Below are positions 29,401 to 63,974 of a stretch of DNA of 64,000 nucleotides, in pieces. How positions within the stretch are numbered: position 1 is the first letter of the stretch; each line of letters opens with the position of its first letter. The notes below the pieces were generated by a model, which saw nothing but the letters and a program-made list of their open reading frames with translations, was not told where the DNA came from and did not search any database. The stretch lies in contig NC_092374.1 in assembly GCF_030028105.1 (NCBI RefSeq), forward strand, positions 194,055,345 through 194,119,344, in the 5' to 3' direction. Source of the stretch: Mobula birostris (taxonomy: Eukaryota). Position numbers and translations under genes: made by a program.

Positions 29401-29443
29401 ATGGAGGTGGGCGCCATTCTGTGCCTGCTGACCGTCTCCTCCG
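29401..29443 (+). CDS. NKp30-like receptor exon 1: signal peptide (MEVGAILCLLTVSS+G)
   Basis: Kozak-like ACGATGG, hydrophobic 14 aa, 43 nt ending in phase 1 at G|GTAAGT. Joins V1 to give ...VSSGIGA/EKF. Confidence 0.85.
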
Positions 29444-30744
29444 GTAAGTAGCTTTCTGTTCCTTTACAGCTACAGCTTGGGGGAGAAGGCAATAGGCAGC
29501 GCGGGAAAAGCGGGAAGGTTCGTCTGCTTCATTTGCGTTCACAACCAACACAACTACGGAGGCACTGTGGGCAGCCCGCGAGGGTCGCCACACATTCCGG
29601 CGCCAACATTAATGTCCACAATGTCGGCAGAACAACACAGAGCACAACAAAACGCAAAAAAAAGGAAGCCCTTTCCTTCGCTCCCACGCGCACACACGGA
29701 CTGCACTCCAATTCCAAGAACGACGCCCCGGCTTCTAGCCTCCAGGCTTCAAACATCGACCCCCGAACTGGCACACGGGGGAAAGGGAGACTCTGAATTC
29801 CAGGTCGAACACTGAGCACGCCGACTTCTCCCTTCTCCCTCTTTCCTTTCCAATCCTGATGAAGGGTCTCAGCCCGAAACGTCCACAGTTTATTCCCCTC
29901 CATGCCGTGCACTGCGACCGTGTTGCCCAGCGAAGTTGTCCCATCTGCCCCCGTTTGGCCCACTGCCCCTTAAACCTCCCCTTTTCATGTACTTATCGGG
30001 AAGGCTTTAAAATATTGGTAATTTATTCACCGCAAACGCCGTTTCTCTCAGCTCATTTCAAACACGTAACACAATTTGTGTGAAGAAATTGTCCTAAACT
30101 CGATGTTAAAACTCTCCTATGTCCTCTTGTTTTTAGCAACCCCGCCACCCCCCCCCCCCGTGGAAAAATGGTGCTTTCAGACTATCTATGTCCCTTATTG
30201 TGTTACATTAGGTCACCCCGCAATCTCCTACATTCCAGAGAATAAGGTCCCGGTCTATGTAACCTCTCCTTGTAACTCAGACCCCCAGATTCAGACGATA
30301 TCCAGGTGATTTTTTTTCCCCTGCATGCTTTCTAATTAGTAACATCTATAATAGGATGGCCAATTCTCTACAAAATATTCCACGTGCAACCTCACCAACG
30401 ACTTGTACAACAGAAACATAACTTCTAGACTCCTATCCGGAAAGCTCTGACTGAGCGATCAGCGTACTAAACATCTTTTTCACTACCTGTATGCCGGTTT
30501 CAATGAACTATGCTCTGATTCTCTCCTTTGTTCACCCTTTCCAGGCTCCGATCCGCACTTTCTCTGTAACTGTAACACTTTATTCTGCATTTTGCTATTG
30601 TTCCTCCTTCGCACTAACTCACGAATCGATGTGATGAAATGATCTGTATGGATGGCAGACAAAACGTAGTTTTTCACTGCACGTCAGTACATGTGACCAT
30701 AATAAACCAATTTACCAATTTTAAAGTTTGCTCCCTGCTTTCAG

Positions 30745-31083
30745 GCATTGGTGCTGAGAAGTTTGTGGTGATTCAGGACAAGTCCAGCATTGTTGCCACA
30801 GAAGGGGAGACGGTGGTTATTCCATGCAGACACAATTCCACGAGTAAGATATGGTCGTACCACTGGGTCAAGGGTGCCAGAAATGGAATAGAAGTGACCA
30901 ATGAAACAGCAGAGTACAGAGGCCGGTTCCTCAGATTTGAAGGAGGTGAACCCTCCATTAACAGCATAGACGTTTCTCTGCAACTGAAGTACGGGCGGCT
31001 GAGTGATTCTGGGATGTACTTCTGCAAGTTGAAGACAATGGAATTGGAAATGTATGGGGCGGGGACGTATCTCACAGTGAGAG
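30745..31083 (+). CDS. NKp30-like receptor exon 2: Ig V-set domain 1
   Basis: Acceptor CTCCCTGCTTTCAG|, donor G|GTAAGT, 339 nt, phase 1-1. Motifs IPC..YHW..EVTNETAEYRGRF..DSGMYFC..YGAGTYLTV; compare human NKp30 EVRNGTPEFRGRL. Confidence 0.93.
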
Positions 31084-31559
31084 GTAAGTCAACCATCAAG
31101 TATCTCCTTGTCCGTGCGAATCAGACCCACCACCCAAACAGAATTTGGCCAAGGCAGGAGAATGATGGAAACACTCAGCAGGTCAGTCAGCCACTGCAGA
31201 GAGAGAAGCAGTTAAATGTTTAAGTCAGTGACCCATCCTCAGAGCAGGGAAGCAAAAAAAAAAAAAAGAATCTTGTAAACAACCTTTTTTTTACCCAGTT
31301 CTGAGGAATGATCTTCCACTTCAAGCATTCATTCTGCTTCTCATCCTGCAGATGCTGCCTGACCTGCTGAGTGTTTCCAGCATTCCCAGTTTTTACCGCA
31401 GATTTCAGCATCTGCAGGCTTTTAATTTTTATTGTTAGTATTTCACCAACAGGAGAATAACAAAAGAGATTCAGCACAGAAAAAGGGGAGGGTGTGGTCC
31501 CAATTCAAACCTTTCTTCCATGGACTCTGTCTACTGACTTTTTCAGGCCTCAGTAAAAC

Positions 31560-33250
31560 AGCAGTATAATCAAAGACCCCACCCACCTGGGACATTCTCT
31601 CTTCTTCCTTCTCCTAATGGGCAGAAGTGTCATGGTCCAATCCGTGAAGTCCCCATTCGGGTTAGCGGTCCGGCCCGTGGACTCCCGACTCCTGGTCTTT
31701 CTGCTGTCCCTTGTTTCAGTTGGGCTTAATCATAGGCACCTGATGCTCGTCTTGCAGCTGGGACTGTAAGTGGCCCTGGCATCGAGTGTGGGGACTGGTT
31801 CGTCTCGTCAGTATCCCCTTGGAGCAACCCACCAGAGGACGGCTAGAGCAGTCATTCGTGATCTCCAGGGCTGGTTGGAGGACCAGCGCTTCATGGAGCC
31901 TTGTTGTCTCTAGTCGGAGCAGTCACCGTGGTATGGATTCGGCCGTTTCCGGGGCCAGCTGATTGGACGTCTGCCACTCCGAACTGGATATAGATTCAGC
32001 TGTTTCCATAGCCAGCCAAGGTTGCTGGCCGCCCCGAGACTCGGAGCCACCCCGGACTGAGCTCCCTTTCTGGCCTTGCCTCCGTGGGGTAAGTCAGGCT
32101 GTCCTTGCCGTTACCCTATGGGTTGGATCTGTCCCTTCCTGTCCTCGCCTCCGTTGGGTAAGTCAGGCCGTCTTTGCCGTTACCCTAAGGCTGGTGTGTT
32201 CCCTTCCCCTCTGCATCTGGATCCCTGACTGTTTCCTCGGTGGTTTACCTCAGCAGTCATCCAAGTCCCGCATCCTAGTAAGAATCCCGGATCGGCGTCC
32301 AAGGAAGGGACCGGCCCTGCGTTACAAGAAGGAGCTCCTCATCCTGCCCAGGAGCTCATCGTCCTGCCGGGGAGCACCTCGAAGAATTCAAGCTTCGTCC
32401 AGTCCTGTAGCTACGTCATATATTTGCCTAGTTCAGGAGTCCGAGCCCGAGTCGAGACCCAGGTTCTGAGTCCTTGCCCGGTCTCTGGCTCGGAGACCAT
32501 ACCCAAGCCTCGTCTAGTCCTGTAGCCAGGCCTGGAAGAACCAAAGCCTCGTCTAGTCCTGTAGCCAAGACTCGAGGAACCCAAGCCTCATCTAGTCCTG
32601 TAGCTAAGCCTCGAGGAACAAGAGCCTCGTCTGTTCCTGTAGCCAAGCCTCGAAGGACCCAAGCCATGTCCAGGTCTATAGCCACGTCATGTCCTCGACT
32701 AGTTCCGGGGGTCCGAGCCCGAGTCAAGACCCAGGTTCGGGGTCCTTGTCCAGTCTCTGGTTCGGAGTCCAAACCCAGACTCCAAGTTCCCAGTTCCTTG
32801 TCCTGGTCCCGCTTTCCCAGCCAAAGTCCTAGCCCACGTCTGTGTTCCTATCCCAGCTCCTAATCTGTGTCCAGTCGCGTCCTTAACTGTAGTCCAGTCC
32901 AGTTCCCAATACTTCAGTGTCCGTGTCTTGCATTTGAGTCCGCCATTAACGCCCACATTATGACAAGAAGATACAAAAGCCTGGAAGCACGAACCGCCAG
33001 GCACAAGGACAGCTTCTATTCCACTGTGATAAGACTATTAACTGGTTCCCTGGTATGATCAGATGGGCTCCTGACCTCACAACCTACCTCGTTATGACAC
33101 CCGTCTACCTACATTGTTCTTCTCTGTCACTGGTGCACTTCATTCTGCTATTGTTTCACCTAGTACTACCTCATTGTGCCGAGTAGTGAGTTGATCTGAA
33201 TGAGCAGTATGCAAGACAAGTTTTTCACTGAACGTCACTATATGGGACAA
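31560..33250 (+). mobile_element. Rex1/L2-type LINE 3' end, split by a solo LTR
   Basis: IIKDPTHLGHSLF..MGR|RYKSLEARTARHKDSFYSTVIRLL reads through when 31628..32970 is removed. Confidence 0.75.
31628..32965. mobile_element. Solo LTR (1338 bp) with 5-bp TSD AGAAG
   Basis: TGTCA...TGACA inverted termini, AGAAG at 31623-31627 and 32966-32970, and an internal 39-bp tandem array at ~32503-32680. Confidence 0.85.
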
Positions 33251-36027
33251 TAATAAACTGAAACCAATTCCAAAGAGGCTGCAGATGCTGGAACCTGGAG
33301 GAAAGGAAGCAAAATGCTGGAGGAACACGGCAGGTTAGGCAGCATCTGGGCAGGGAGATTAGCAGCTGTCCTTTCAAAAGGGGCCATTCAGTCCATTCTG
33401 TCCATGCAACAGCAATTCTATTCTCCAGATTTTCTCCAGAGCTTCGCAAACCCTTCCAAGTCCGATGCTGCCCAGTTCCCTCTTGAACACTAACATTATT
33501 CAAATGTATACACACAGTGAGCCGTTAGTGGCAAGATCCTGAACAGAATCAATAAGCAGAAGGATCTTGGGGTCCAGGTTCAAAGCTCCCTGAAAGTGGC
33601 CACGTATGTTGATAAGGTCGAAAGAAGACACAAGGCACATTTGTCTTCATTATTCAAAGAAATGAGATCAAGAGTTGGGAAGCAGCATTGCAGCTTTATA
33701 TAATTATGTAGTTTGCAGGCAGTTCTGGTCATCCCAATTTAGGAAGGATGATAAGGTTGTGGAGAAGGTGCAGAAGATATCTGCCAGGATTCTGACGGGA
33801 TTAGAGGGCAGGTGTTATTAGGAAAGGGTGGACGACGTGGGTTGTTTTCACTGGAGAAGGAGAAACTGAAAAGAGACATGGAGCATAGAAACCTACAGCT
33901 TGTTACAGGCCCTTCGACCCACAATGTTGTGCCGACCATGTATTCTACTCTAGAAGCTGCCTAGATTTGCCCTACCACATAGCCCTCTATTTTTCTGAGC
34001 TTCCATATACCTATCTAAAAGTCTCTTAAAAGACCCTGTTGTATCCTCCTCTACCACAGTCGCTCAAGAGCATTCCATGCACCCACCGCTCTCTGTGTGG
34101 AAAACTTACATCTGACATCCCCGCGTACCTACTTCAAAGCACCTTAAAACTATGCCCCCTTGTGTTAGCCATTTCAGCCCTGGGATAAAGCCTCTGGCTA
34201 TCCACATGATAAATGCCCCTCATCATCTTATATACCTCTATCAGGTCACCTCTCATCCTCCATTGCTCCAAGGAGAAAAGGCTTTCACTCTACTTATACT
34301 CATAAGGTACGCTCTCCAATCCAGGCAACATCTTTGTAATTCTCCTCTGCACTCTCTCAACAGTATCTGAACACAGTATTCCAAGTGGGGTCTAACCAAT
34401 GTTTTATATACCTGTAACATTACCTCACAGCTCTTGAACTTAATTCCATGGTCAATGAAGGCCAACACACCATACGCCTTCTTAACAACACCGTCAACCT
34501 GCACAGCGGCTTTGAGTGTCCTATGGACTCGGACCCCAATATCTCTCAGATCCTCCACACTGCCAAGAGTCTTCCCGTTAATATTTTATTCTGTCTTCAA
34601 TTTTGACCTACCAAAATGAACCACTTCACACTTACCTGGGTTCAACTCCAGCTGCCATTTCTCAACCATTTCTGCATCCTATCGATGTCCCGCTGTAACC
34701 TCTGACAAACCTCCAGACTATCCACAACACCCCAAGCTTTTGTGTCATCAGCAAACTTACTAACCCACATTTCCACTTCCTCATCCAGGTCATTTATTAA
34801 AATCATAAAGATGAGGGGTCCCATAACAGATCCCTGCGGAACACCACTGGCACCGACCTCCATGTAGAATATGAACCATCTACAACCACCTTTACCTTCT
34901 CTGGGCAAACCAACTCTAGATTCACAAAGCAAGGTCTCCTTGGGTCCCATGTCTCCTTACTTTCTGAAGAAGCCTTGCATGTGGAACCTTATCAAATGCC
35001 TTACTGAAATCGATATACACTACACCCACTGCTCTATCTTCATCAACGTGTTTTGTTACATCTTCAAAGAATTCAGTCAGGCTTGTAAAACATGACCCGC
35101 CCTTGACAAAGCCATGCTGACTATCCCTAATCAGATTATGTCTCTCAAAATGCTCATAAATCTTGCCTCTCAGGATCTTCTCCAACAACTTTCCCACCAC
35201 TGAAGTAAGACTCACTGGTCTATATTTTCTTGGGTCATCTCTATTCCCTTTCTTGAAAAGGGGAGCAACATTTGTGACGGTCTAATCTTTTATTACTTTT
35301 CCCATTCTGTTTGATGATGAGGCTCAGAAATCTCCTCCCTTACTTTCCACAGTTGCCTGGGGTATATTTCGTCTGGTCGTGGCAACTTAAATAAATTAAT
35401 ACGTATCAAGAACTCCAGCACATCCTCTTTCTTTATGTCTATATGCTCAAGCATTTCTGGCAGCTGTAAGTCATCCCCATAATTGCCAAGGTTCATTTCA
35501 CTGGTGAATACTGAAGAAAAGTATTCATTAAGCACCACTATTTCCTCTTTCAACTCCATGCACACGTTTCCACTATTGCAGTTGATTGGTCCTATTCTCA
35601 GACAGTTCGTCCTCTTGCCCTTCACACACTTGTACAATGCCTTGGGGTTTTCCTTAACGCTACTCACCAAGTCCTTTTCATTGCCCCTTCTCACTCTCAT
35701 AATTGTATTCTTCAGCTCCTTTCTGGCAACCTTGTTATTTTCCAGAGTTCTAGCAGTACCTAGTTTCTTGAACCTTTTGTAACCTCTTTTTTTATTCTTA
35801 TCTTGACCTTCAACATCCTTTGAACAACATGATTTTTTAACCCCACCATCCTTTCCCTACCTCAATGGAACATACCTATGCAGAATGCCATGCAAAATTT
35901 CCCTGAACATTTGCCACATTTCTGCTCCCAATTTATGTTCCCAAGTTTCTGCCTAATAGCCACATATTTCCCCTTACCCCAATTAAATGTTTTTACAAAT
36001 TGTCTGCTCTTATCCATCCCTCTCCAG

Positions 36028-37800
36028 TGAATTGAATTGACTTTATTTCTTACATCCTTCAGATACATGAGGAGTAACAATCGTTATGTTACGTCTCCAT
36101 AAAATGTGCAATCATTGTAATTTATAATAAATAGAACAGTCAGTGTAATATAGAGTACACTCAAATCATCGGTCTGATGGCCCCGTGAAAGAAGCTGTTC
36201 CGGAGTCTGTTGGTCCTGACTTTTATGCTGCGGTCCCACTTCCTGGATGGTAGCAGCTGGAATAGATGGTGGTTGGGATGACATGGGTCCCCAATGATCC
36301 TACGGGCCCTTTTATACATACCTGACCTTGTAAATGTCCTGAATCATGGGAAGTTCACAAATACTGATGCACTGGGCTGTCTTCACCACTCTCTACAGAG
36401 TCCTGCGATTAAGGGAGGTACAGCTCCCATACCAGGCAGTGATGCAGCCAGTCAGGATGCTCTCAATTGTGCTCCTGTAGAAAGTTTTAAGGGTTTGGGT
36501 GTCCGTACCAAACTTCCTCAACCGTCTGAGGTGAAAGAGGCGCTGTTGTGCCTTTTCACCACACAGCTGGTATGTACAGACCACGTGAGGTCCTCGGTGA
36601 TGTGGATGCCGAGGAACTTGAAGCTGTTTACCCTCTCAACCCCAGATCCATTGATGTCAATAGGGGTTAGCCCATCTCCATTCCTCCTGTAATCCACAAC
36701 CAGCTCCTTTGTTTATGCAACATTGAGGGAGAGGTTGTTTTCTTGACACCACTGTGTCAGAGAGATGACTTCTTCCCTGTAGGCCACCTCATTATTGTTT
36801 GAGATAAGGCCAATCAGTGTAATGTCGTCGGCAAAATTAATTAGCAGGTTGAAGCTATGTGTGGCGATACAGACATGGGTATACAGGGAGTAAAGGAGGT
36901 GGCTAAGGACACAGCCCAGAGGGGCTCCTGTATTGAGAGTCAGAGGGTTGGAGGTGAAGGAGCCCACTATTACAACCTGCTGGCGATCTGACAGGAAGTC
37001 CAGGATCCAGCTGCACAAGGCAGGGACAAGGCCGAGGTCTCTAAGCTTCTTGTCGAGCCTGGATGGAACTATGGTGTTGAATGCTGAACTGTAGTCCAAG
37101 AACAGCATTCACACTTAAGAATCCATCTTCTTCAGATGTGTAAGGACGCCATGTAGAGCTGTGGCTATTGCGTCATCTGTCGATTGGTTGTGTCAGTAAG
37201 CGTATCGTAGGCAGTCTAGTGTGGGTGGTAGAATGCTGCAGATATAATCCTTGACCAGCCTCTCAAAGCATTTGCTTACTATTGAGGTGAGTGTGACAGG
37301 ACGCTAGTCATTCAGGTATGTTACCTTGGTCTTTTTTGGTACAGGGAGAATGGTAGGTAATTTGAAGCAGGAGGGCACTCTACACTGGGAGAGGAAGAGA
37401 TTAAAAATATCAGTAAACACACCTGTCTCGGCCTGAAACATCGACTGCACCTCTTCCTACAGATGCTGCCTGGCCTGCTGCGTTCACCAGCAACTTTGAT
37501 GTGTGTTGGTTGAGTAAACACACCTGCCAGTTGTTCAGCGCACATACTAAGTACTCGCCCTGGGTTGCCTTCCAGTCCCGCAGCCTTGCGACTGTCAACT
37601 CGTTGGAAACGTCTGCGTACCTCAGCCTCAGAGATGACCAGGTTGCAGGTTGTAGCGGTGGCTTTCCTCGGAACTCAGAGTTAGTGACATCGAACCGAGC
37701 ATAAAGGCAACTGAGCTCTTCTGGGAGAGAGTCCGCGATGTTGGCGGTACCACAACGTTTGGCTTTGAAGTCTGCGATGGTATGCAGCACTCGCCACTGA
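36028..37800 (-). mobile_element. Rex1/Babar LINE, 5'-truncated, nested in CR1
   Basis: ORF 36713..37108 (MLFLDYSSAFNTIVP..GAPLGCVLS..FADD), 36393..36584 and 37410..37790. (AATTG)n tail at ~36028. Confidence 0.9.
37426..37512 (+). mobile_element. 87-bp Penelope-like 3' terminal fragment with 14-bp TSD
   Basis: AGTAAACACACCTG at 37412-37425 and 37513-37526. The insert has the GGCCTGAAACATCGAC..GATGCTGCCTGGCCTGCTG terminal sequence seen at the ends of the PLE copies. Confidence 0.8.
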
Positions 37801-41355: not shown

Positions 41356-41685
41356 GAAAAAGCAAGAGCTTCACGGTTACGCAAGGTCAGTCCAGTATAT
41401 TTGTAGGTGAGGGTGAAACGGTCCTCATGGTCTGTAGCCATAATGCCAATCACTCTGGAGACACCGTGTTCTACAGCTGGTACAGGAACACATCCGAAGT
41501 CTCCAACGGGACGGCAGAGTTTGCAGGGCGCGTCCTTGGGCCTGACCAGGTGGATTCCTTCAAAGCTTCCATAAAGCTGGTGGATGTGAGAGAGAGCGAT
41601 TCCGGAATGTACTACTGCAAAGTACGGATAGACGGGATTGGCGAGGAAATCGGAGAAGGAGTACGGCTGACCGTCAGTCACACAC
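41356..41685 (+). CDS. NKp30-like receptor exon 3: Ig V-set domain 2
   Basis: Acceptor TTCTCCCTTCCCATTGCAG|, donor C|GTGAGT, 330 nt, phase 1-1. Motifs MVC..YSWYR..EVSNGTAEFAGRV..ASIKLVDVRESDSGMYYCKVRIDGIGEEIGEGVRLTV align closely with NKp30 (EVRNGTPEFRGRL..CRVEVLGLGVGTGNGTRLVV). Confidence 0.95.
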
Positions 41686-42635
41686 GTGAGTGGTTCCCCA
41701 GCCCGAAACAATACTGAGCTCATTACCACCCACTAATACCCACCCTCCCCCATCAACTTTCTATTCGTGGAGCCCTGTCCGGTTTCCTGCCTTCACTTCC
41801 AGTGTCATCACCAGCAGGACCGGCTGACCATTGCTGAATGTAGATGGGAGACTACAGATAACAAGAATTACATTAGGGTGACTGGCTGGAGATCACACAC
41901 TTATCAACCCATCAACAATGATTGGCTCAGTGTGCAGATTATAGAACAGTGGCAATGGGTCATACACAATACTCCCTCACGCTGATATCCGGTGCGGCAG
42001 TGGGCATACACTGTCCTCTTCCCTCTGGGACTGGGCGGGGCAGTGAGTTACAAGGTCTCTCCCCATCTGGGTCGAGGTGAAGCAGTCAATCACACACTAC
42101 CCTCTTCCCTCTCTGGCGCTAGGTGAAGCAATGGGTCACACACTGTCCTATCCTATTCTCAATGGATCCTTCCTGTGATGGTGTGGCCAACCCCCACCTC
42201 CGTTTGCTCTGGTTTTCTCCCACATGCCAAGTATGTGTGGGTCACTGGTTTAGTTGGTTGCTGTAAATTGCCCCCCGTTTGTTGTGAAATGGTAGAAGTT
42301 GGAAGGATTTGAAGAGAAGGTGGGGAGGATCGGTTATCAGTAAAATTAATAGGAAAATAAATGGGATTAGTGTAGGATGTTTAAATGTTAGACAAAGATC
42401 AACGTTCGATGTAACTTTATCACCTTTTGGTCATAATATACAATTATTGGAAGAGCAACTTCCCTGTGCTTCCTGCCCTGGAATTGGCAGGAGGGGCTGT
42501 GGCAGGAATAGGAATTTCACCAGTGGGGTTAAATACTTTCAGGTCAGCTGCCATATCATTGCGTGCTTCATCAGTCTCGAAGGGCCATATGGCCCATTTG
42601 TGCTCGTGTGTTCTGAGATGTTTTCCCCCCCACAG

Positions 42636-42749
42636 GCAAAATGAGATTTGTCACGATTCTCCTGGTGATCCTGTTAACGGTCTTTGGAATATCAGGGAGC
42701 ATCCTGCTCATCAGCATCCTGTTTTGGAGAAAAGTACGCAGCGAAGAAA
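42636..42749 (+). CDS. NKp30-like receptor exon 4: transmembrane
   Basis: Acceptor TTTTCCCCCCCACAG|, donor A|GTAAGG, 114 nt, phase 1-1. Reads (R)KMR-FVTILLVILLTVFGISGSILLISILFW-RKVRSEE, a hydrophobic span followed by a basic stop-transfer. Confidence 0.9.
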
Positions 42750-42779
42750 GTAAGGAGACTGAATCATTTACCTCTATGG

Positions 42780-43330
42780 CCAGTATAGGATCATCAGACA
42801 TAGAAGGATTTGGCCATTCGGCCCAGCAAGTTTACTCCACTATTCCCTATTGAGGGAATTTTTTCCCTCTCAACACCATTCTCCTGCATTCCTCCATAAA
42901 GTTAGAAACCAATACTCAACCTATCATCTTGTGCTTTAAATTTACCCAATCATTTGGCCTCCACAGTCATCTGTGGCAATGAATCTTCTGGGTAATGAAA
43001 CTCCTGCTTATATCCTATTCTGAGCAGTGCCCTCAGGTCCAAGACTCTCCCAATATTGGAAATATCCTCTCCACATACACTCTGTTTAGGCATTTCAGTA
43101 TTTGATAGATGTCAGTAAGATCCCTCCCCACCATCCCTCTAAACTCCAGCGAGTACGGCCCAGAGCCAACAATCCTCATACATTAACTCTTTCATTCCCA
43201 GATCAGTTTTGTCATTCTCCTCTGGATCCTCTCCAATGCCAGCACATTGTTTCTTAGATATGAAGCCCAAAACTGCACACAACACTGCCAATGTTCTTTG
43301 ACTAATGCTTTATATCCTTAAAGGTGAGGA
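42780..43330 (-). mobile_element. CR1 3' fragment
   Basis: CR1-type 3' UTR (ggccattcggcccag) and RT C-terminal sequence on the reverse strand. Confidence 0.65.
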
Positions 43331-44689: not shown

Positions 44690-45345
44690 TTCTGAAGCCA
44701 CCTTTCCCTCCTGGGTGGAACTGAGAACAAACGCACTCCTGGTGACCACTCATTTCAATTTGACTTCCTATTCCCATTCTGACATGACTGTCCATGGCTT
44801 CCTCTACCGCCACAACGAGGCCAAACTTAGGATGGAGGAGCAACACCTCATATTCCATGTAGGTAGCCTCCAACCTGGTGGCATTAACATTGGTTTCTCT
44901 CCGCTTCTGTCCTCTCTTTTTCCATTCCTCATTCTGGTTACCCTCTCAGCCCCTTTCCTTCTCCTTACCCAACCACCCCCTTCCTCAGATGCCCCTTGTC
45001 CTTCCCTTCAATTGTCCTCTGTCCTCTTCTGTCAGATTTCTTCATCTTCAGCCCTTCACCTTTTCTACCTATCACTCTCCCCTCAGCTTCTTATTTCATT
45101 CGCCCTCCATCACCTGCCAACCTTCCCCCTCACCTGGTCTCACCTATCACTTGGCAATTTGTACTCCACTCACTTCCCCTCACATTATCTTCTTGTTCTG
45201 GCTTCTACCCCCTTCCTTTCCAGTCCTGTTTCAGGCTCTTGATCAGAAGCATTGATCGTTTATTGCTTTCCATAAATGCTGCCTGACCTGCTGAGTTCAT
45301 CCAGCATTTTGTGTGTGGTTCGCTGGACTTCCAGCATCTGCAGAA
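44690..45345 (+). mobile_element. Penelope-like element 3' part (GIY-YIG C-terminus plus pyrimidine-rich terminal region)
   Basis: ORF 44667..45242: HFN..SHSDMTVHGFL..EAKLRMEEQHLIFHVGSLQPGGINIGF. Confidence 0.75.
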
Positions 45346-45398
45346 TCACTTGTGTTTATTGATTAATCGGCATCTTTCTTCTCTCCTTCCCTTCACAG

Positions 45399-45417
45399 AT
45401 TCTCTCCGGGTTCAAAG
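45399..45417 (+). CDS. Receptor cytoplasmic micro-exon 5 (19 nt; N-SLRVQ-R)
   Basis: Long polypyrimidine tract ending CTTCACAG|, donor AG|GTGAGT, phase 1 to 2. Confidence 0.8.
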
Positions 45418-45514
45418 GTGAGTGCTTGTTACACACTTTTGTTTTACAGAATGTGTTCCATTGCAATGTAAAGCGACACACATGGAGTAAACATTTTCCA
45501 ATTTTTCTCTTCAG

Positions 45515-45552
45515 ACAGCAGCTATCAACTCTGAACGACAGCATCACAGCGG
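45515..45552 (+). CDS. Receptor cytoplasmic exon 6 (38 nt; QQLSTLNDSITA)
   Basis: ATTTTTCTCTTCAG|, donor GG|GTAAGT, phase 2 to 1, open. Confidence 0.8.
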
Positions 45553-45863: not shown

Positions 45864-46284
45864 TAGAACATAGAACATAGAACAGTGCAGCACAGTACAG
45901 GCCCTTCGGCCCACAATGTTGTGCCGACCTTAAACCCTGCCTCCCATAAAACCTTAAATTCCTCCATTTACCTGTCTAGTAGTCTCTTAAATTTCAGTAA
46001 TGTATCTGCCTCCACCACTGACTCAGGCAGTGCATTCCACGCACCAACCACTCTCTGAGTAAAAGACCTTCCTCTAATATCCCCCTTGAACTTCCCACCC
46101 CTTACCTTAAGGCTATGTCCTCTTGTATTGAGCAGTGGTGCCCTGGGGAAGAGGCGCTGGCTATCCACTCTATCTATTCCTCTTAATATCTTGTACACCT
46201 CTATCATGTCTCCTTTCATCCTCCTTCTCTCCAAAGAGTAGAGCCCTAGTTCCCTTAATCTCTGATCATAATGCATACTCTCTC
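45864..46284 (-). mobile_element. Young CR1 3' fragment, same subfamily as CR1 B
   Basis: ORF 45968..46276 is almost identical to 3946..4386. (ATAGAAC)n tail. Confidence 0.92.
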
Positions 46285-47308
46285 TGTTCTGGGACCATTG
46301 CTCTTTGTGATTTTTATAAATTATTCAGATGAAGAAGTGGGAGGGTGTGTTAGTAAGCTTGTAGATAACATGAAGTTTGTGGAGTTGTGGATAGTGTGAA
46401 ATGGTGGCAAGGATTACAACAGGAAATTGATGGGATGCAGATCTGGGTTGAGAATGGCACGTGGAATTCTATCCTGAAAAGTGGGAATTGATTCACTTAT
46501 GAAGCTTAATTTGAAGGCAGAATACAGGGTGAATGGCAGATCTCCTAGCAATATGGAGAAATAGAGGGATCTTGGAGTCCATGTCCATAGATCCCTCAAC
46601 GTTGCCGTGCAGGTTGGTTGAGCCGTGAAAAAGGCATATGGTGTGTTGGTCTTCATTAATTGCGTGATTGAGTTCAAGAACTGTGAAGTAATGTTGCAGC
46701 TCTGTAAAACCCTTTGTGTATTGTGTTGAGTTGAGCAGAGATGTTAGGAATAAGTTTTTTATTCAGAGAGTGGTGAGTGCGTGGAATGGGCTGCCGGCAA
46801 CGATGGTGGAGGCGGATACGGTAAGGTCTTATTAGAGACTCCTGGATAGGTACACGGAGCTGAGATATGGATGGATATGGGTAACTCTGGGTGATTTCTA
46901 AAGTAAGTACATGTTCGGCACAGCATTGTGGGTTGAAGGGCCTGTACTATGCTGTAGGTTTTCTATGTTTCCATTGAGTGCTCATCGCATGATTATTTAC
47001 CACAATGCTGCCTGGATTGGAGAAGATAGGCTGAGTGTGGCAGGGCCTTTCTCTTCAGAGCGGAGGATAGAGGTGAATTGATAGAGGAGTACAAAATGAT
47101 AAGAGGCATAGATCAATTGGATTCTTTCCCAAGGCTGAACTTGCTAATACTGTATGAGGGGCCATAATTTTATTGTGTTCGGAGGAAAGTATAGGGGGAA
47201 TATCAGAGGTAAGTTCTTTACACAGTGAGTGTGGGTGCCTGTAGGAAGCAGAGAACAATTGTAGACCTGCCAGTGTTTGCATTAATATGCACATAATTAA
47301 TTTTACAG

Positions 47309-47349
47309 ATGATTTAACTGCACTCCAATTGGATGATGGACCTGGGACG
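47309..47349 (+). CDS. Receptor cytoplasmic exon 7 (41 nt; DDLTALQLDDGPGT)
   Basis: AATTTTACAG|, donor CG|GTAAGT, phase 1 to 0, open. Confidence 0.78.
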
Positions 47350-48694: not shown

Positions 48695-48724
48695 GCTCAA
48701 GATGGGAATGCCCCTGCATGCCCG
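48695..48724 (+). CDS. Receptor cytoplasmic exon 8 (30 nt; AQDGNAPACP)
   Basis: TTATTTCACAACAG|, donor CG|GTAAGA, phase 0-0, open. Confidence 0.72.
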
Positions 48725-51930: not shown

Positions 51931-51961
51931 TGAGACATGGCTTAATTTTCATTCTTTCCAG

Positions 51962-51996
51962 CGACAAGACCAATTGATCTACACACCAATGAAAAA
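51962..51996 (+). CDS. Receptor cytoplasmic exon 9 (35 nt; RQDQLIYTPMK), YxxM/ITIM-like motif
   Basis: TTTTCATTCTTTCCAG|, donor AA|GTGAGT, phase 0 to 2, open. Confidence 0.8.
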
Positions 51997-55952: not shown

Positions 55953-55990
55953 CCTGAAGACTTTCAAAATCTCAACGGACAATGGCATGG
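55953..55990 (+). CDS. Receptor cytoplasmic exon 10 (38 nt; N-LKTFKISTDNGM)
   Basis: CCTTCCCCCTCTTTCTCCTCACAG|, donor GG|GTAAGT, phase 2 to 1, open. Confidence 0.82.
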
Positions 55991-56079
55991 GTAAGTAAAT
56001 CCCCTTGAGTGTGGCTGATGCAAAAAAGGGTGCATCCTCCGAACTCCCTGACACCCCAGTCACTCCTCACCTCAGCAGG

Positions 56080-56906: not shown

Positions 56907-56956
56907 ATGTGATCACCCAGTGTCGACCAGACAACTCGCCGCTCTCCGATGGAGAG
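56907..56956 (+). CDS. Receptor cytoplasmic exon 11 (50 nt; DVITQCRPDNSPLSDGE)
   Basis: ATTCACTCTCACAG|, donor AG|GTAAGT, phase 1 to 0, open. Confidence 0.8.
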
Positions 56957-57120
56957 GTAAGTACATATATAGTAGCTCATATCCTTGACAAATTGAAGAC
57001 CATTCAGCCTGTTCATGTCTGTCCACCCTAATTCTTCCACTTGAACCCCTGCAACCTGTTCTGCCCACTTTCCCACTGGGCTGCTCCTTGTTGGATATTC
57101 GCCTAGTGCTTTCCTTATAG

Positions 57121-57180
57121 GTTTACTTTCCTATGCTTGCTTACATTTTTATGAAATCACCTATATGGGAAAATTGTTCA
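57121..57180 (+). CDS. Candidate optional exon (60 nt; VYFPMLAYIFMKSPIWENCS)
   Basis: GTGCTTTCCTTATAG|, donor CA|GTAAGT, phase 0-0, open. Not needed for frame continuity. Confidence 0.35.
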
Positions 57181-57478
57181 GTAAGTTTTCTAGTAATTTG
57201 AGTACAGCTGATTCTGTATTTTTCTAAAAGCTTCTAAGTCTCTCTGCAGCAGGTATCATGCTACATGAGTTTGTCTATTTTATAGGTTCATTGCTGTCAC
57301 TGGGATGTTGTTATCTCGAGTCTGAATCTGAGGCAATCACCATTTCTTTTTCTTTGTCTTTTCCTTGTGAGTTCATTTTTCTTGTAAATCTTAACAAAAC
57401 GATTGTAGCCACCTACTTTTATGTCTCATTCTTGCCTTTCAAAGAACCTCGATTCTAAATGACCAGACCCAACACCCT

Positions 57479-57951
57479 CAGACAAGAGAAAATCTGCAGA
57501 TGCTAGAAATCCGAGCAACACATCCAAAAGGTTGGAGGAACAGCACTTTAAATTCTGATTGGGCAGCCCCCAACCTGATGGCATCAACATCATTTTCTTG
57601 AACTTCTGGTAATGCTCCCCACACCCCTCTCCTTCACTATTCCCCATTCCCATTTCCCTCTCTCATCTTATCTCTTTGCCTGCCCATGGCCTCCCTCTGG
57701 AGCTCCCCCTTTTCTTTCTTCCATGACCTTCTGTCTCTTTCACCGAGTTACTTCCCAGCTCTTTACTTCATCCCCTCCCCATTCAGGTTTCACCCATCAC
57801 CTGGTGTTTCTCTCTCCACTCCCCCACCTTTTAAATCTACTCCTCAGCTTTTTTCTCCAGTCATGCTGAAGGGTCTCGACTCAAAACGTCGACTGTACTC
57901 TTTTCCTAGATGCTGCCTGGCCTGCTGAGTTCCTCCAGCGTTTTGTGTGTG
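57479..57951 (+). mobile_element. Penelope-like 3' fragment with inverted 5' segment and 14-bp TSD
   Basis: AGACCCAACACCCT at 57465-57478 and 57952-57965. The first ~60 bp are the reverse complement of the PLE terminal sequence. Confidence 0.8.
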
Positions 57952-58548
57952 AGACCCAACACCCTGTACCAAGAGTAGAAGTTGATGTAATTTATTGTGG
58001 ATTAGGGGAATGTTCTGGAAAATTTGTGGCTGGAACTGAGAGCCGTTGCCAAAAAGTTCCGGAGACCGAATTTCAATTTGACTTCTTCTCTCAGCGGGTT
58101 ATGTGAATGCGGAACGAGCTGCCAGTGCAAGTGGTGCATGGGAGTTCAATTTCAATGCTTAAGAGAAGTTTGGATAGGTACTTGGATAGCAGTGGCATCT
58201 GGCATGGATGGCTTTGGTCCGGATAATGGTCAATGGGACGAGGCAGTTTGAATGGTCAAGTAGAATTGGCCCCCTTTATTCAAACCTTCCAACCCACTTG
58301 CCAATCAGCTAATCTTCTACTATGTTAGTATCTCTCCTGTTATACCATGGGGTCTTATCTTGTTAATCAGTCTCATGTGCTGTACTTTTCCTCCCACATC
58401 CCGAAACTGAGCAGCCTGATAACTTGATAGTCCGCTGTAAGTTGCAAAGGTGGGCAGTGGAATCTGGGTCTAGGAATGTGGGAGAGAATATTGCAGGCTA
58501 GCATTGATCTGGTGGGCTGAGTTTCATTCTGTGACACGATGTGGGTGA

Positions 58549-59303
58549 TATTACGTACCCCGGAACGAGTTAAAAGAAACAGCAGTAATGGAACACACCT
58601 GGAGTCTGGTTTTGCTGTTAACTAGCACTATTTTATTAGTAACTACGTAATAAAGTAACATGAAACCAGATAAATCAAACAGGTTAGCAGAGTTTTTGCA
58701 TATATAGGTGTGTAAATACAAAACCCAAACTTCTTCAAAATTAAGTGGTAACTGATACAGTTTTACGATGGTATGTAAACGAAGTCAGTTCAGTTCGTGA
58801 TATTCAGCTGAGTAGAATTGAGGAGAGAAAGAGCTGATTTGTTATCCAAGTAAGTCGATGCCGTCGATCGTTCCGTAGCCCTCCGAATCCTTTAAGGTCA
58901 CCGAATGTGACCATACTAAAGGTACCGTCTTCACGTGGTAAAACTATAAACCCAGGCAAGGGTTAAACACACTGAGAGCTTTCCACCGGTCACTCCTTTT
59001 CCCGCACTGAGAGAGCCACTGGTCGATTCTCCCGATCGATCCACAAAACCCACACGTTTTGGGGCACTCAAAGCTCATCAAGTTTCCGTTTCTTCTGTGT
59101 CTCTGTATGTCTACAAGAAAGCCAGCTGACCTTGTATATATATCCAAACATGCTGAACACCAGCTGTCCAGAATATAGCTCCACCCTTCTATCACCATGG
59201 CGACTCACGAGATGCTCGGTGCCTCTCTCTCTGAACCAGCGGCACACTCTCTCTCTTTTTAAAGGTACAGTCCGTAATGAATAACACTTAGGATTACGTC
59301 ATA
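58549..59303 (-). mobile_element. Solo LTR, Gmr1-type terminus
   Basis: The reverse strand ends AATAAA....GGGGTACGTAATA, like the LTR ends at 796 and 10767. Flanks GTGA/CTGA suggest a decayed 4-bp TSD. Confidence 0.6.
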
Positions 59304-59848
59304 CTGAACGATCTGTAAATAACTAACTGGAGACACAAGAGAAGGCAAATGCTAGAATCTGGAATGTCAAAAAATCTGCTGGAGGAGTCAATCGGGTTGA
59401 GCAGCCTCTGTAGCAGGGAGTGGTGGTGTGGGACATTTCCATTCAAAACCCTAAACCCTGCACCAGGGCTTGGAAGTCGAGATGGCCTGTACAAAGAGAT
59501 GAGGGTGTGTTGGAGGTAACTGGTAGTGGCTGCTGGATAACAGGCTCTGCAGATAACAGAAAGGGGTGGAATTTGGAGGCAAGGGTGGATGGCAGACAGC
59601 TCTGGGAAGGATGGGATATTTGGAAGTTTGGTTGATCGGCAAGCTTGGCAAGATTTTACGAGACGTTTCGGCTACAATCATGTGGGATGTGATTGGTTGT
59701 CGTATCCCTTGGCTCTGGATCTGGCACTTCGGGGAACATCAGGGCAGACATGGACCTGGTCTGATCTAATCCTTCACTGTATTGCCCTGCTTAGATTTCC
59801 ATGCCGATTGTAATAAGATGATTCTAATATAATCCTTTTCTCCACAAG

Positions 59849-59946
59849 GTACCCACTGTAGAGGACATCCAGTATGCAGAGATATATCCAAGTTACTCCA
59901 AAAACCGAACTCCTGCCAAGACATCGGTGGAAGATGGCGATTTGAA
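59849..59946 (+). CDS. Receptor cytoplasmic exon 12 (98 nt; VPTVEDIQYAEIYPSYSKNRTPAKTSVEDGDL), canonical ITIM
   Basis: ATCCTTTTCTCCACAAG|, donor AA|GTGAGT, phase 0 to 2. IQYAEI fits (I/V/L/S)xYxx(I/V/L). Confidence 0.85.
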
Positions 59947-60266
59947 GTGAGTTACTTATGAGTGGCTGGATACATAGGATGACTGAGCATGGAGAATCAC
60001 AGCACAGAAACAGGCCCTTCAGCACAGCATAATCCTCGGACTATGTTGTTCGAGGACGCAAACAACTCATTTCACTGCACAGGGTTCGATATGCACGTGT
60101 CAGGTAAAGATCACCTTTAACTCTGGCGCCAAATCAGAGGTGGAAGGATTGGAGAGAAGATTGGGAGCAACATTTTCACAAGAGTGGAGCGGGAGTCCAG
60201 AACTCCTTTGTGAAAGGGCAGGAGACACAGAAATCTTCAGCACCTTAAACTGAGTGATGTGTGTGT

Positions 60267-60420
60267 NNNNNNNNNNNNNNNNNNNNNNNNNNNNNNNNNN
60301 NNNNNNNNNNNNNNNNNNNNNNNNNNNNNNNNNNNNNNNNNNNNNNNNNNNNNNNNNNNNNNNNNNNNNNNNNNNNNNNNNNNNNNNNNNNNNNNNNNNN
60401 NNNNNNNNNNNNNNNNNNNN
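60267..60420. other. Assembly gap (154 N) flanked by simple repeats
   Basis: N run between (GT)n and a TCTG-rich sequence. Confidence 1.
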
Positions 60421-60689
60421 GTATCTCTCTGTCTGTCTGCCTGTGTGATCTAACAGCCTCTCAAATGTACTTCTACATCAATTTGCACCATTCCAGGCAG
60501 CTACCACTCTCTGTGTGTTTTTAAAAAAAGCACTTACTCCACAATCTCCTCTGAAATTTCTCCCTCTAACCTTAAATGCATTTCCTCTAGAAAGAGGAAG
60601 AAATTGCCTTTAAACTCACGAGAGAACATAGGCCATCAAACTTTTTTGCTGTTGATGTTTCTGTAGCAGGCAATTTCCTTTTTACAAGG

Positions 60690-60813
60690 TTGAGTTACTA
60701 GCTCGACTCTCAACCCAGCACGGGTGGAAAGCTGCCTGAGGAGCCAACTGGGTTCGAACTCGGGAACCTTCGCTCCGAAGTCCAGCGCTGATGCCACTGC
60801 GCCACCAGCTGGC
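60690..60813 (-). mobile_element. tRNA-derived SINE head with A and B boxes
   Basis: The reverse strand has TGGCGCAGTGG (A box, 60794-60804) and GAGTTCGAACC (B box, 60751-60761), followed by non-tRNA body sequence. Confidence 0.75.
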
Positions 60814-61722
60814 TACATTTCCTCTAATATTCAATGTTTATTATAATTATTCAATTTCAATATTAATGAAATAATCAAATTATTAAAGTAATGATAAAAT
60901 GCATTAATATATAACCAAAAAGAACACCAAATGGTCATGTTAGACATGGTTGAATTCTGTGAGTAAAAGTCACGCTGGAGTTTATTGTCATATGCATGGA
61001 TGCAATGAAACACTTAATTGCAGCAGCATCACATAGCATCATTTAAACAGAGTTACACACAAAATGCTGGAGGAACTCAGCAGGTCAGGCAGCATCTATG
61101 GAGAGGAATAAACACTCACTGTTTCAGGCTGAGACCTTTCAGCATGACTGAAAAGGAAGTGGGGTGGGGTCGGGGGGGAGAAGTAAAGAAGCTGGAAAGA
61201 GAAGGGAATAGTGGTGGGGGTAAGGAATACAAGCTGGCAGGTGATAGGTGAGACCAGGTGAGAGGGAGGCTGGGTGGCATTTGTCTGTGATGCGTTGGAT
61301 TTATAGCATCTGCAGAATCTCCTGTGTTTATCGTACTAATGTTATTCTCAAGCAAAGCATACATATATATATTTTTTTCATGACTTTACTCACCTCTTGA
61401 ATGAGTTGAGTAGTTTTGCCCCTTTTCCTGCAGAACAGTGGGTCAGAAACACAGTACTGGGGGAGAGAGCACTGCATGGATGCCTGTTACAAAATGCACC
61501 TAAGGTCTGGCCCCAGTGCAACCAGTGTCACTGTGCACCGGGTGCAGAATGTAATGGTGGGAGTAGGCAGATACACTTGGGCTGCCCCAATGCACACACT
61601 ACAAGAGGTAGATGCTGAATTTCGTAAAATAAAAATTTGACACTATCGCCACAGAAACGAAAAATGCCACCAGCACAGAGTCTGGGTCTCATTAACCCCA
61701 TCCTCCCCACTTCCTTTGGCAG

Positions 61723-61757
61723 GCAGGACTACGGCTACGACGAGCTGAACGTGATAG
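61723..61757 (+). CDS. Receptor cytoplasmic exon 13 (35 nt; K-QDYGYDELNVI), YxxL motif
   Basis: CCCCACTTCCTTTGGCAG|, donor AG|GTGAGT, phase 2 to 1, open. Confidence 0.82.
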
Positions 61758-61789
61758 GTGAGTATCAAAGGTAGCAAAGCATGGTGGAG

Positions 61790-62765
61790 AGACTGGGGCA
61801 AAGGGGATTCTGGGGCTGCATGGGAACTGCGGTAAAATAGTGGGGTTAAAATAGGGACTGGGGTAAGATATTGAGGTTAAAATAGGGACTAGGTTAAATA
61901 GTCAGTGGGGTTAAAGTGGAGACTGAGGGGTTAAAATGGATACAGTCATTAAAATGGAGACTCAGAGGTAAAATGTGAATGGGGTTCGGGGAACTGGGGT
62001 AAATAGTGGGATTAAGGTGGGGACTGGAGTAAAATACTGGGGATAAGTGGGGAATGGGGTAAAATAATGGGGTTGAAATAGGGACTGGGGTAAAATCGTG
62101 GGGTTAAATAGGAATGGGGTAAACTAGTCAGTAGGGTTAAAATGGCAACGTTTAAAATGGAGACTGGAATAACATGGGGATGGGGTAAATATATCAGTGG
62201 GGTTAAAATGAGGATGGAGTGGTTAAAATGGATACAGTCATTAGAGTGGGGATTGAGGTGTAAAATGAGAATACGAGTTCTATGGGATTTGGGTAAAATA
62301 GGCAGAGATGTTAAAATGGTGACAGGAAGCAGGCTAAGTAGGGATTGAGGGGATTGAACAAGAATAGGGATAAATGGGAACTGAGGAGATTAAACAGATA
62401 TGGGGCTAACTGGAGACTTGGGGTTAAATTGGAATGGTGCTAAATGGGGACTGAGGGGGTTAAACAGGAATGGGACTAAATGGAGACTGAAAGGTTAAAC
62501 AGGAATTGGGCTAAATGGAGACTGGGGTTAAACAGAAATGGGGCTAAATGGGGACTGAGGATTAAACAAGATAGGCTTAAATGGGGACTGGGGATTAAAA
62601 CAATGGGATAAAGTGGGGTCTGATGATTGAACAGGAATGGGGCTTAATGGGGATTGAAGATTAAACAGGATGGGGTTAATTGGGGACTAGGGATTAAAAC
62701 AATGGGGTAAATGGGAATGAAGTTTAAAACAGGAATGGGGTAAATGGTGACTGGAATAAATGGGC
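61790..62765 (+). repeat. Degenerate G-rich tandem array (~19-20 bp and ~35 bp units)
   Basis: Repeated GGGGTTAAAATAGGGACTG-like then GGGATTAAACAGGAATGGGGCTAAATGGGGACTGA-like units; C-poor on the + strand. Confidence 0.9.
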
Positions 62766-62934
62766 AGTGGGGGTAAAACATCAAAGGATATAGTGTTGGT
62801 TCCAGAAAATGGCACCAGGTTAGCAGATCATCATCAGTTATCTTAAATGATCGAGCAGGTGTCCTACTCTGAATCTGTCAGTAACATTTACTGATGCTTT
62901 AGATGCCTCATTTGCTTCTTTCTCTAATTCACAG

Positions 62935-62972
62935 CAAAACGTAGCCTCCAGCCTGAAGAAACCACAAACCAG
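62935..62972 (+). CDS. Receptor cytoplasmic exon 14 (38 nt; A-KRSLQPEETTNQ)
   Basis: TTTGCTTCTTTCTCTAATTCACAG|, donor AG|GTAAGA, phase 1 to 0, open. Confidence 0.78.
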
Positions 62973-63848
62973 GTAAGAAAGCAAGCATTTGCTGAGGTCA
63001 GGGCAAGTGGGGAGATCCCGGAGAGATTTGAAAATGTAGCCGAGAAATGTTAAATTGAGCTGTGTTTGGCCCTTAGCTTCAGAAATCAAATGAAGTGGTG
63101 ATTGGGTTAAAATCCATCAGAACATTTTTCATTTCCTGTCCATGTGGCTGGATTATTTCCAATAAGTCCCTGAACTGGAGATGTGAGAGGGGAGATTGAG
63201 TAGATGAGGGGTGTATTCCCTTGAGTCCAGAATAACTAGACGTTCCAGACCATGAGTGTTCACACAACTGTGGGAACTAAAACTGCTCTCAACTGGGAGA
63301 GTGTACATCAGAGGCCACTTGACACAAGTGATTCAGAAACTGCTCACCTTATTGATAAGGACAATGATTTGTGCCTCCCAGCCCCCAGCATGTGCGGGCT
63401 GTGGTAGTAGGATAATCGGCCATTGTAAGTTATCCAATTGCGTAGATGAGTGGCTGAGTCTGGTGGGGGAGGAGCTGACAGGCATGTAAAGAGGGTAAAA
63501 TGTGTGAGAGTAGGATCAGATTGATCATTGGCACGGACACGATGGGCCACAAAACTTTTTCTCTGACCTCATGAGACAAGAGGGACTTTTTTCACTCAGT
63601 GAATTATTGGAACCTGGGGTTAGATTCCACCACAGTGAGCAGAAGGGAGCTGGAAGAGCATCTGAAGGTTGATGGGCTGAGAGTGGAGCAGTGGAAAAAG
63701 CTGGATTGCTTTAGTAAGAGCCAGTGCAGCCTAGATAGGCTGAATATCCTCCTCCTCTGGCTTGCCACTACAGAGGAGTTGTTTTTATCCTCCCAACGGT
63801 TGGGCCACACCACTTAACAGAATTAAATTGGCTCCTCTGTGTTTTCAG

Positions 63849-63974
63849 TAGGAAGATGGGTCCATGAACCAACAGGTCGTGAGGAAGATTGGGAGAGAAG
63901 CACGTCCTCAACTGTGCTGTCAGCAGCTGGGTGATGAATATGGCAAAGATTCCAGATCCTGTTCCTTTGATTGA
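63849..63974 (+). CDS. Probable terminal exon with NAGNAG acceptor: immediate TAG stop, or a 40-aa extension (EDGSMNQQ...SCSFD*)
   Basis: CTCCTCTGTGTTTTCAG|TAG|GAA. The first AG gives a stop in phase 0; the second gives an open frame to TGA at 63972-63974. Confidence 0.5.

Follow-up and report, generated by a model that had tools for sequence, protein, structure and literature searches.

An intact NKp30-family receptor gene with two V domains and a micro-exon tail in the ray Mobula birostris

Positions 29401–63974 (~34 kb) of a 64,000-nucleotide stretch of Mobula birostris DNA (hereafter the window) contain a genuine and intact gene of 15 exons that encodes an immune-cell surface receptor in the elasmobranch NKp30 (NCR3) family. 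The best explanation of the locus as a whole, and one we consider likely, is that this intact family member encodes a 416-aa type I membrane receptor whose tail probably signals by itself. The architectural variant is new; the family is already known. NKp30 is among the few NK-cell receptors with a history traceable from sharks to humans, and ideas on the origin of antigen receptors near the MHC give it a central place. No MHC gene lies within the window. By combining V domains with inhibitory and PI3K-type motifs of its own, the receptor provides a concrete candidate for how NKp30 signalled before it depended on ITAM adaptors.

Exon chain

The gene spans 34.5 kb of the forward strand and comprises a leader exon, two V-set Ig exons (V1, membrane-distal, and V2, membrane-proximal), a transmembrane (TM) exon, ten tail micro-exons of 19–98 nt (c1–c10) and a stop-bearing exon 15. 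A preliminary description of this DNA had proposed the leader, V1, V2, TM and ten small exons with GT-AG signals, and rebuilding the 14 coding exons from sequence reproduced that chain exactly, with a sum of 1248 nt or 416 stop-free codons. Every exon is bordered by an AG that follows a pyrimidine tract and by a GT, and the splice sites are canonical in 28 of 28 cases. Each V exon, like the TM exon, is a phase 1-1 cassette.

Exon 1 (29401–29443; 43 nt) encodes the signal peptide, running from an ATG through 14 codons plus 1 nt to a GT donor in phase 1. It is the sole leader-like match within the window, and the sequence flanking it shows 95% identity to the leader exon of M. hypostoma. V1 (exon 2; 30745–31083; 339 nt) and V2 (exon 3; 41356–41685; 330 nt) both match the Pfam V-set profile, at 1.8e-10 and 1.2e-13, respectively. 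The TM exon (exon 4; 42636–42749; 114 nt) was placed by its translation and by an RNA contig from a related species that joins 41685 directly to 42636, giving the exact V2–TM junction.

The tail of an M. hypostoma protein, LOC134346462 (P0002), maps colinearly onto the micro-exons. Used as a tblastn query, it located c2 (45515–45552; 38 nt), c6 (55953–55990; 38 nt) and c9 (61723–61757; 35 nt), each equal in size to its counterpart in three other species, and c3 (47309–47349; 41 nt), c4 (48695–48724; 30 nt) and c7 (56907–56956; 50 nt; 80% identity, E 5e-5), each equal in size to both ray models. The same search found c8 (59849–59946; 98 nt) at 88% identity (E 1e-13), an exon also present in relatives' RNA contigs, and c10 (62935–62972; 38 nt), which encodes the last coding residues, at 92% identity with flanks 97% identical to M. 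hypostoma. For c1 (45399–45417; 19 nt), the AG/GT signals and the frame fit, and its size is that of the M. hypostoma, H. sabinus and catshark models. Four-species DNA alignment, exon sizes and motif conservation defined c5 (51962–51996; 35 nt). Exact spliced mapping showed 13 of the 14 coding exons to be equal in size to those of the M. hypostoma and Hypanus sabinus NCBI models. The colinearity of an independent protein tail, together with these equal exon sizes, means that the exon chain is not due to chance. The frame has stayed open over 416 codons although the introns have diverged by ~10% from M. hypostoma.

The 3' end differs from the preliminary description, which placed it at 63974. 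The best-supported model stops at a TAG (63849–63851) that is the first codon of exon 15, behind an acceptor orthologous to the one used at the end of the model in M. hypostoma. In H. sabinus, the exon orthologous to exon 15 adds seven residues, and an alternative acceptor at 63956 could add four here. The 3' UTR of exon 15 probably extends past the window end. One assembly gap, a run of N at 60267–60420, lies inside intron 12, outside the coding sequence, and breaks no exon: it begins 320 nt past the c8 donor and ends 1.3 kb ahead of the c9 acceptor. Its flanks align to points only ~41 nt from each other in the M. hypostoma intron, in a stretch with no modelled exon, and the residues encoded on its two sides adjoin directly in homologues. 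Introns of the gene also hold LINE-type reverse-transcriptase fragments.

V domains and family assignment

Each V exon encodes a non-rearranging VJ-type V-set domain with the canonical Cys-Trp-Cys and a J-like G strand. V1 ends in YGAGTYLTV and V2 in IGEGVRLTV, where the J consensus is G-x-G-T-x-L-x-V as quoted in PMC11599192. In sequence searches of the PDB, human NCR3 was the top match to V2 (1.2e-9, 31% identity) and the best single-domain match to a V1-type profile (1.1e-14), while V1 as a lone query gave an ambiguous nearest relative. An AF2 model of V2 (pLDDT 91.7) had human NKp30 as its top four Foldseek matches (TM 0.76–0.81). Among 1.84 billion proteins, matches to V2 include possum and guinea-pig NCR3 as well as the nurse-shark NCR3 proteins QTT61904 (P0096; E 2.2e-9) and QTT61898 (P0143; E 7.6e-8), with 38–39% identity to the latter two. 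In a tree of 41 V domains, composed of NCR3-family sequences only, the V1 and V2 clades of rays are placed among those of the elasmobranch NCR3 family; the two nurse-shark proteins fall within this set of clades as well, apart from tetrapod NCR3. These sequence and model comparisons support NKp30 as the nearest known relative of both V domains. The NKp30-like character first ascribed to the domains is thereby borne out, by sequence and fold for V2 and by profile for V1. V2 is the most conserved part of the gene, with dN/dS of 0.32–0.64.

Other immunoglobulin families fit less well. For the pIgR/CD300/MDIR type, pIgR reached 48 bits only when summed over several domains, versus 57 bits for single-domain NCR3. 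SIRPs combine a single V domain with two C1 domains. SIRP-alpha/beta, with a VJ-type distal V, ranked next after NKp30 in both fold and sequence, but scored below it, and no C-type Ig exon lies between V2 and TM. SIRP-alpha does signal through ITIMs, as predicted for the window receptor.

CD28, CTLA4 and ICOS have a single V domain and a dimerising stalk cysteine. The window gene has two V domains and no stalk cysteine, sharing with that family only a membrane-proximal YxxM, to which its tail adds further motifs. When the V domains were compared by sequence, and V2 also by structure, as the preliminary description had suggested, NKp30 came out best and CD28-family chains were absent from both the 60 PDB sequence matches and the 50 Foldseek matches listed. 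The original assignment to an NKp30/CD28 superfamily thus keeps its NKp30 side, and its CD28 side comes down to the YxxM, which CD28-type co-receptors carry in the membrane-proximal tail (PMC11599192).

Within the NCR3 family, the window gene combines shared domains with a different architecture. Mammalian NKp30 (NCR3; 3NOI, 3PV6, 6YJP) likewise has a single-exon V-set domain with a J-like G-x-G. It consists of one V domain, a stalk, a TM arginine for pairing with CD3-zeta or FcR-gamma, plus a short motif-free tail. The window gene instead has two V domains and hardly any stalk, the core of its TM helix is uncharged, and its tail of 141 aa bears three tyrosine motifs, an arrangement unlike mammalian NKp30, just as first described. 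The elasmobranch nurse-shark NCR3 family, of which Kinlein et al. reportedly recognised eight subtypes in 2021, also uses non-rearranging VJ-type V domains. QTT61898 and QTT61904, however, have one V domain each versus two here; in one of the pair the tail is short and carries a single YxxM, and in the other the TM helix has a lysine.

Transmembrane exon and tail motifs

Exon 4 encodes a very short stalk, a TM helix and a basic stop-transfer stretch. In its translation, the hydrophobic core of the helix contains no charged residue, and Lys and Arg occur only at both core borders. The ten micro-exons that follow encode a YxxM (IYTPM in c5; Y325), an ITIM (IQYAEI in c8; Y368) and an acidic YxxL (DYGYDELN in c9; Y397). 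All three motifs are invariant columns across six aligned ray and shark proteins, spanning rays to four shark orders. Further members with the tail were found beyond this six-species alignment, and a search with the tail alone matched only this receptor family.

Since the three motifs are invariant across these six proteins, the receptor probably signals by itself. It would rely on phosphorylation of its own tail rather than, like mammalian NKp30, on a borrowed ITAM adaptor. SHP-1/2 would be recruited by the ITIM together with the YxxL that lies ~29 residues further downstream, and PI3K p85 by the membrane-proximal YxxM; such dual recruitment would make the protein an inhibitory or dual-signal lymphocyte co-receptor. 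V1, which is fast-evolving, is probably the contact for a B7H6-type self ligand, and the better conserved V2 may serve as a spacer or second contact. Ligand, cell type and signalling partners are all features that we infer. The gene model and junction list make the signalling question testable by ordinary RNA-seq, binding and pull-down experiments.

The preliminary description took the receptor to be lineage-specific, which does not hold: rays and four shark orders have the tail in common, joined to one to several V domains. The range among relatives, from one to five V domains, would be accounted for by duplication and skipping of cassettes. We raise, as a tentative and rather doubtful extension, an unnamed NCR3 subfamily across elasmobranchs that pairs NKp30-type V domains with a self-signalling tail of about ten micro-exons. 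Duplication and skipping of phase-1 cassettes would tune its number of V domains (one to five), and it may represent an ancestral adaptor-independent signalling mode of NKp30, which tetrapods later exchanged for a charged TM helix and ITAM adaptors.

Alternative readings, transcription and relatives

Could the model join pieces that belong apart, or extend past the true end of the protein? V1 and V2 lie 10 kb apart with just 41% identity, and sharks have single-V family members, so the two exons might belong to separate transcription units or to mis-assembled, collapsed paralogues. We regard this as very improbable. Just a single leader exon is present, V1 has no TM exon of its own, its donor agrees in phase with the V2 acceptor (phase 1 for both), and the sole assembly gap is far downstream. 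Moreover, V1-V2-TM models occur in M. hypostoma, H. sabinus and catshark, and the genomic alignment is colinear. A short-tailed receptor, with the TM donor unused and the micro-exons outside the main product, is more improbable still. The open frame does run past the exon 4 donor, for 34 codons to a stop at 42851–42853, but its length by species is 34, 47 and 14 codons; because it differs in each, this extension is not conserved as coding. The ten micro-exons, in contrast, are conserved in size, phase and motifs, and c8 is spliced to its neighbours in relatives' RNA.

The intact long-tailed gene is also favoured over a paralogue that has recently lost, or is losing, its function through skipping or mis-splicing of c5 and neutral drift in a birth-and-death cluster, a reading we judge unlikely. 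Four-species DNA alignment shows that a 7-nt deletion (~51955), just upstream of c5, removed the ancestral acceptor, leaving an exon of 35 nt here versus 44 nt in relatives. With that acceptor deleted, an in-frame cryptic c5 acceptor must be used; if it is not, the frame breaks ahead of all three motifs. The replacement, a CAG preceded by a good pyrimidine tract, keeps the frame. dN/dS is 0.78–0.92 against the two ray models and about 1 on this branch, where 43 changes are nonsynonymous and 11 synonymous (20 versus 3 in the tail), counts too small to tell a ratio of 1 from about 0.5. High ratios are, moreover, usual in NK-type receptors. In LOC134346461, a paralogue next door in M. hypostoma, the tail is visibly decayed, and no source-species RNA was found for the gene. 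The window copy, however, carries no stop or frameshift in 416 codons, its splice sites are canonical throughout, and all three motif tyrosines are retained with their key flanking residues.

Transcript evidence comes from relatives. The preliminary description pointed to spliced RNA across the predicted junctions, and such RNA exists in related species, at the V2–TM junction and on the flanks of c8. In two related species, RNA contigs match over exactly the c8 exon, with the neighbouring letters lying elsewhere, and contigs of 198, 393 and 2749 nt carry c8 with spliced-on flanks. For one of these RNA contigs, X9, a mismatch at 59880 and the mismatch count fit M. hypostoma. Source-species RNA gave no support: the sampled c8 words were absent from its own RNA runs, and contigs near V2 differ by about 2–8%.

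The NCBI models LOC134346462 (M. hypostoma) and LOC132393824 (H. sabinus) match the window gene in architecture, tail motifs and micro-exon sizes, with full-length identities of 82% and 79%, respectively. The window copy is three residues shorter at c5 than relatives' models owing to the acceptor deletion. We are unsure of strict orthology to LOC134346462, since V2 and TM resemble LOC134346461 more closely. LOC119975535 (Scyliorhinus canicula) and LOC121291130 (Carcharodon carcharias) share the architecture and tail motifs; the catshark model LOC119975535 has a similar micro-exon layout and lacks the TM exon that the window gene has. All four are unnamed predictions called "uncharacterized protein". 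The gene had been presented as hidden and possibly uncharacterised; it is hidden only in part, as relatives' models already contain these exons. Automatic annotation scatters this one receptor family over at least four mutually unrelated labels: pIgR-like, SIRP-like (applied to several members), turtle homolog B-like and uncharacterized.

Exon structure of the receptor gene

The receptor gene opens on the plus strand with a start codon and hydrophobic leader (29401-29443), whose strong GT signal leads to two V-type exons, V1 (30745-31083) and V2 (41356-41685), and a transmembrane (TM) exon (42636-42749). The latter three are also on the plus strand and carry strong AG and GT signals, and all four exons end in phase 1. 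V1 shares 41% identity with V2, and the 64-kb window has no further V exon or leader. The upstream part of the window (1-29300) contains no cellular gene. Instead, Pfam identifies ORFs for a reverse transcriptase (4305-5843, minus strand), a GDSL esterase-like protein (6851-7753, minus), an endonuclease (7715-8635, plus), a second reverse transcriptase (8722-9795, plus), an integrase zinc-binding domain (12719-13375, plus) and a reverse transcriptase with RNase H (14148-15254, plus).

Searching 1.84 billion representative proteins with V2 retrieved a 419-aa protein in which two V domains are followed by a TM helix and a long tail; it is the NCBI model LOC134346462 of Mobula hypostoma. Eight pieces of its tail are colinear with the window between 45.5 and 63 kb by tblastn. 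Base-by-base reading at each tail site yielded ten micro-exons (c1 to c10) that range in length from 19 to 98 nt, each with a pyrimidine tract and AG acceptor, a GT donor and a fitting phase. Together with the four large exons they form 1248 nt, or 416 stop-free codons, so the rebuilt exons arrive at the same figure as the preliminary description of this sequence.

After c10 (62935-62972) the frame reaches a GT donor. The M. hypostoma model has a TAG stop as the first codon of its last exon, and alignment to that model locates an orthologous acceptor with an immediate TAG at 63849-63851. We adopted this site, conserved in M. hypostoma, as the predicted start of the terminal exon, and keep as an alternative the acceptor at 63956, which would add four residues. 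A 49-nt piece of relatives' RNA contigs in 63801-64000 had suggested the alternative exon (63956-63970), but this RNA piece is compatible with either start. Upstream of these sites, a run of N (60267-60420) sits in intron 12, between c8 (ending at 59946) and c9 (starting at 61723). In M. hypostoma the sequences flanking the gap align to intron points separated by about 41 nt, a place without a modelled exon, and the residues encoded by c8 and c9 adjoin directly in all homologues. The gap therefore leaves the reading frame untouched.

An open frame also runs 34 codons beyond the TM exon donor (42750-42853), and read-through there would give a short-tailed receptor. We rejected this reading: the equivalent extension spans 47 codons in M. 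hypostoma but 14 in Hypanus sabinus, and so shows no conservation as coding sequence.

Close relatives of the M. hypostoma protein are LOC132393824 of H. sabinus and LOC119975535 of the catshark Scyliorhinus canicula. Spliced mapping of each of the three proteins onto its own locus DNA reproduced the database sequence exactly. Both ray models have exons of 43, 339, 330, 114, 19, 38, 41, 30, 44, 38, 50, 98, 35 and 38 nt, and the window exons share these sizes except for c5 (51962-51996), which measures 35 rather than 44 nt. Full-length identity of the window product is 82% with the M. hypostoma protein and 79% with that of H. sabinus. No protein of the source species matching the gene model was found in a collection of 5.8 billion proteins. 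The catshark model has a similar layout, with several exons of other size and no equivalent of c4; it also omits the TM exon and joins V2 straight to the tail. Either the model is in error or the protein is a soluble isoform, an option that the phase 1-1 TM cassette allows.

Family of the V domains

Pfam assigns the V domains to V-set only. Against solved structures, human NCR3 (NKp30) is the top match of V2 (1.2e-9). V1 alone is ambiguous, with immunoglobulin light chain and SIRP first and NCR3 at 2e-4, and in a profile search with eight V1-type domains NCR3 is the best-scoring single domain (1.1e-14; 57 bits vs 45 for SIRP). When an AlphaFold model of V2 (pLDDT 91.7) was compared by Foldseek, the four best matches were all human NKp30 (E 1e-10, TM up to 0.81, 31% identity), followed by SIRP-alpha, an outcome that bears out the NKp30 kinship first suggested for this gene. 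ESM Atlas returned only generic V-set and antigen-receptor-like clusters.

Named sequence matches of V2 include the nurse-shark NCR3 proteins QTT61904 and QTT61898, presumably members of the published nurse-shark NCR3 family, as well as NCR3-like proteins of several sharks and NCR3 of possum and guinea pig. A tree of 41 V domains places the V1 and V2 clades of rays among elasmobranch NCR3-family clades and apart from tetrapod NCR3; the tree covers the NCR3 family only and supports no particular order of the deeper branches. By its V domains, the gene belongs to the NCR3 family.

Mammalian NKp30 has one V domain, a TM helix that carries a charge and only a short tail, whereas the window gene shows none of these three features. 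Its two V domains, uncharged TM core and 141-aa tail agree with the earlier claim of an architecture unlike the mammalian gene. We rate this architecture as new within the known NCR3 family, in a comparison that did not extend to the published paper on shark NCR3 diversity; a search for the subtype name NS344823 returned no match. The suggestion that the gene may be uncharacterised holds in part: RefSeq labels its relatives uncharacterized, pIgR-like, SIRP-like or turtle homolog B-like, but these relatives are already predicted there.

In M. hypostoma the V1-V2 intron of the gene holds an extra V1-like exon (29257-29569 and 30548-30674 of that locus) that is interrupted by an insertion of about 1 kb. 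The NCBI model does not use this exon, which probably represents a dead third V cassette, and the window contains no remnant of it. The neighbouring three-V paralogue, LOC134346461, has a decayed tail, with cysteine for the YxxM tyrosine, ITIM exons missing from the model and the YxxL motif gone, which suggests birth-and-death turnover in the receptor cluster. M. hypostoma also has a five-V gene.

A conserved tail with putative signalling motifs

The TM core carries no charged residue and is preceded by a stalk of only a few residues. The acidic tail contains YTPM (YxxM; c5), IQYAEI (ITIM; c8, 59849-59946) and DYGYDELN (acidic YxxL; c9, 61723-61757). Alignment of six proteins from Heterodontus, Chiloscyllium, Scyliorhinus, Mobula and Hypanus revealed invariant columns at I-Y-x-P-M, the ITIM tyrosine and D-x-x-Y-x-E-L-N, and a profile search with this alignment added a Carcharodon protein (96% of the query covered). 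In Heterodontus and Chiloscyllium the same tail follows a single V domain, in other sharks several; searching with the tail alone retrieved no match outside this family. Judging from motif knowledge, the receptor probably signals by itself; the ITIM and distal YxxL would recruit SHP-1/2, and the YxxM would recruit PI3K.

Selection, possible decay and RNA evidence

Several features are caveats to the reading of a working receptor in the source species, with decay the less likely reading. Compared with M. hypostoma and H. sabinus, the window lacks 7 nt in 51940-51962, a deletion that removes the ancestral 3' splice site of c5. A CAG lying 9 nt downstream could serve instead: the frame is kept, three residues are lost and the exon measures 35 nt instead of 44. 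The two ray models give dN/dS values of 0.92 and 0.78 with the window gene, compared with 0.66 between them, and with Hypanus as outgroup the source-species branch carries 43 nonsynonymous and 11 synonymous changes. Against decay, all 416 codons are free of stops, splice sites are canonical throughout and every motif tyrosine is retained. Constraint is strongest in V2 (0.32-0.64). Intron divergence from M. hypostoma is about 10%, and V2 and TM resemble LOC134346461 more closely; orthology to LOC134346462 may therefore not be strict, as judged from these alignments.

Spliced RNA contigs come only from relatives, so the junctions are confirmed in the family and not in the source animal. In relatives' runs, a 212-nt contig passes straight from 41685 to 42636; its 13 mismatches mark it as the product of a paralogue or of a different species. 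Three contigs from two other species, 198, 393 and 2749 nt long, match precisely the extent of c8, while their adjoining letters map elsewhere. The 198-nt contig has two mismatches to the window's c8; the reported one, 59880, is among the three c8 differences between M. hypostoma and the window. Sampled words of c8 were absent from source-species runs, one of which looks like DNA. The proposed junctions thus find RNA support at the V2-TM join and at c8 in relatives, but none at c8 in the source species. Contig placement is mostly repeat-derived and omits micro-exons below about 40 nt, so most tail junctions are not directly visible. Intronic repeats at 45100-45500, 45900-46300, 46700-47100 and 61000-61400 show many internal joints, and the contigs placed on them reach summed depths between ten thousand and several hundred thousand; they are abundant, transcribed interspersed repeats.
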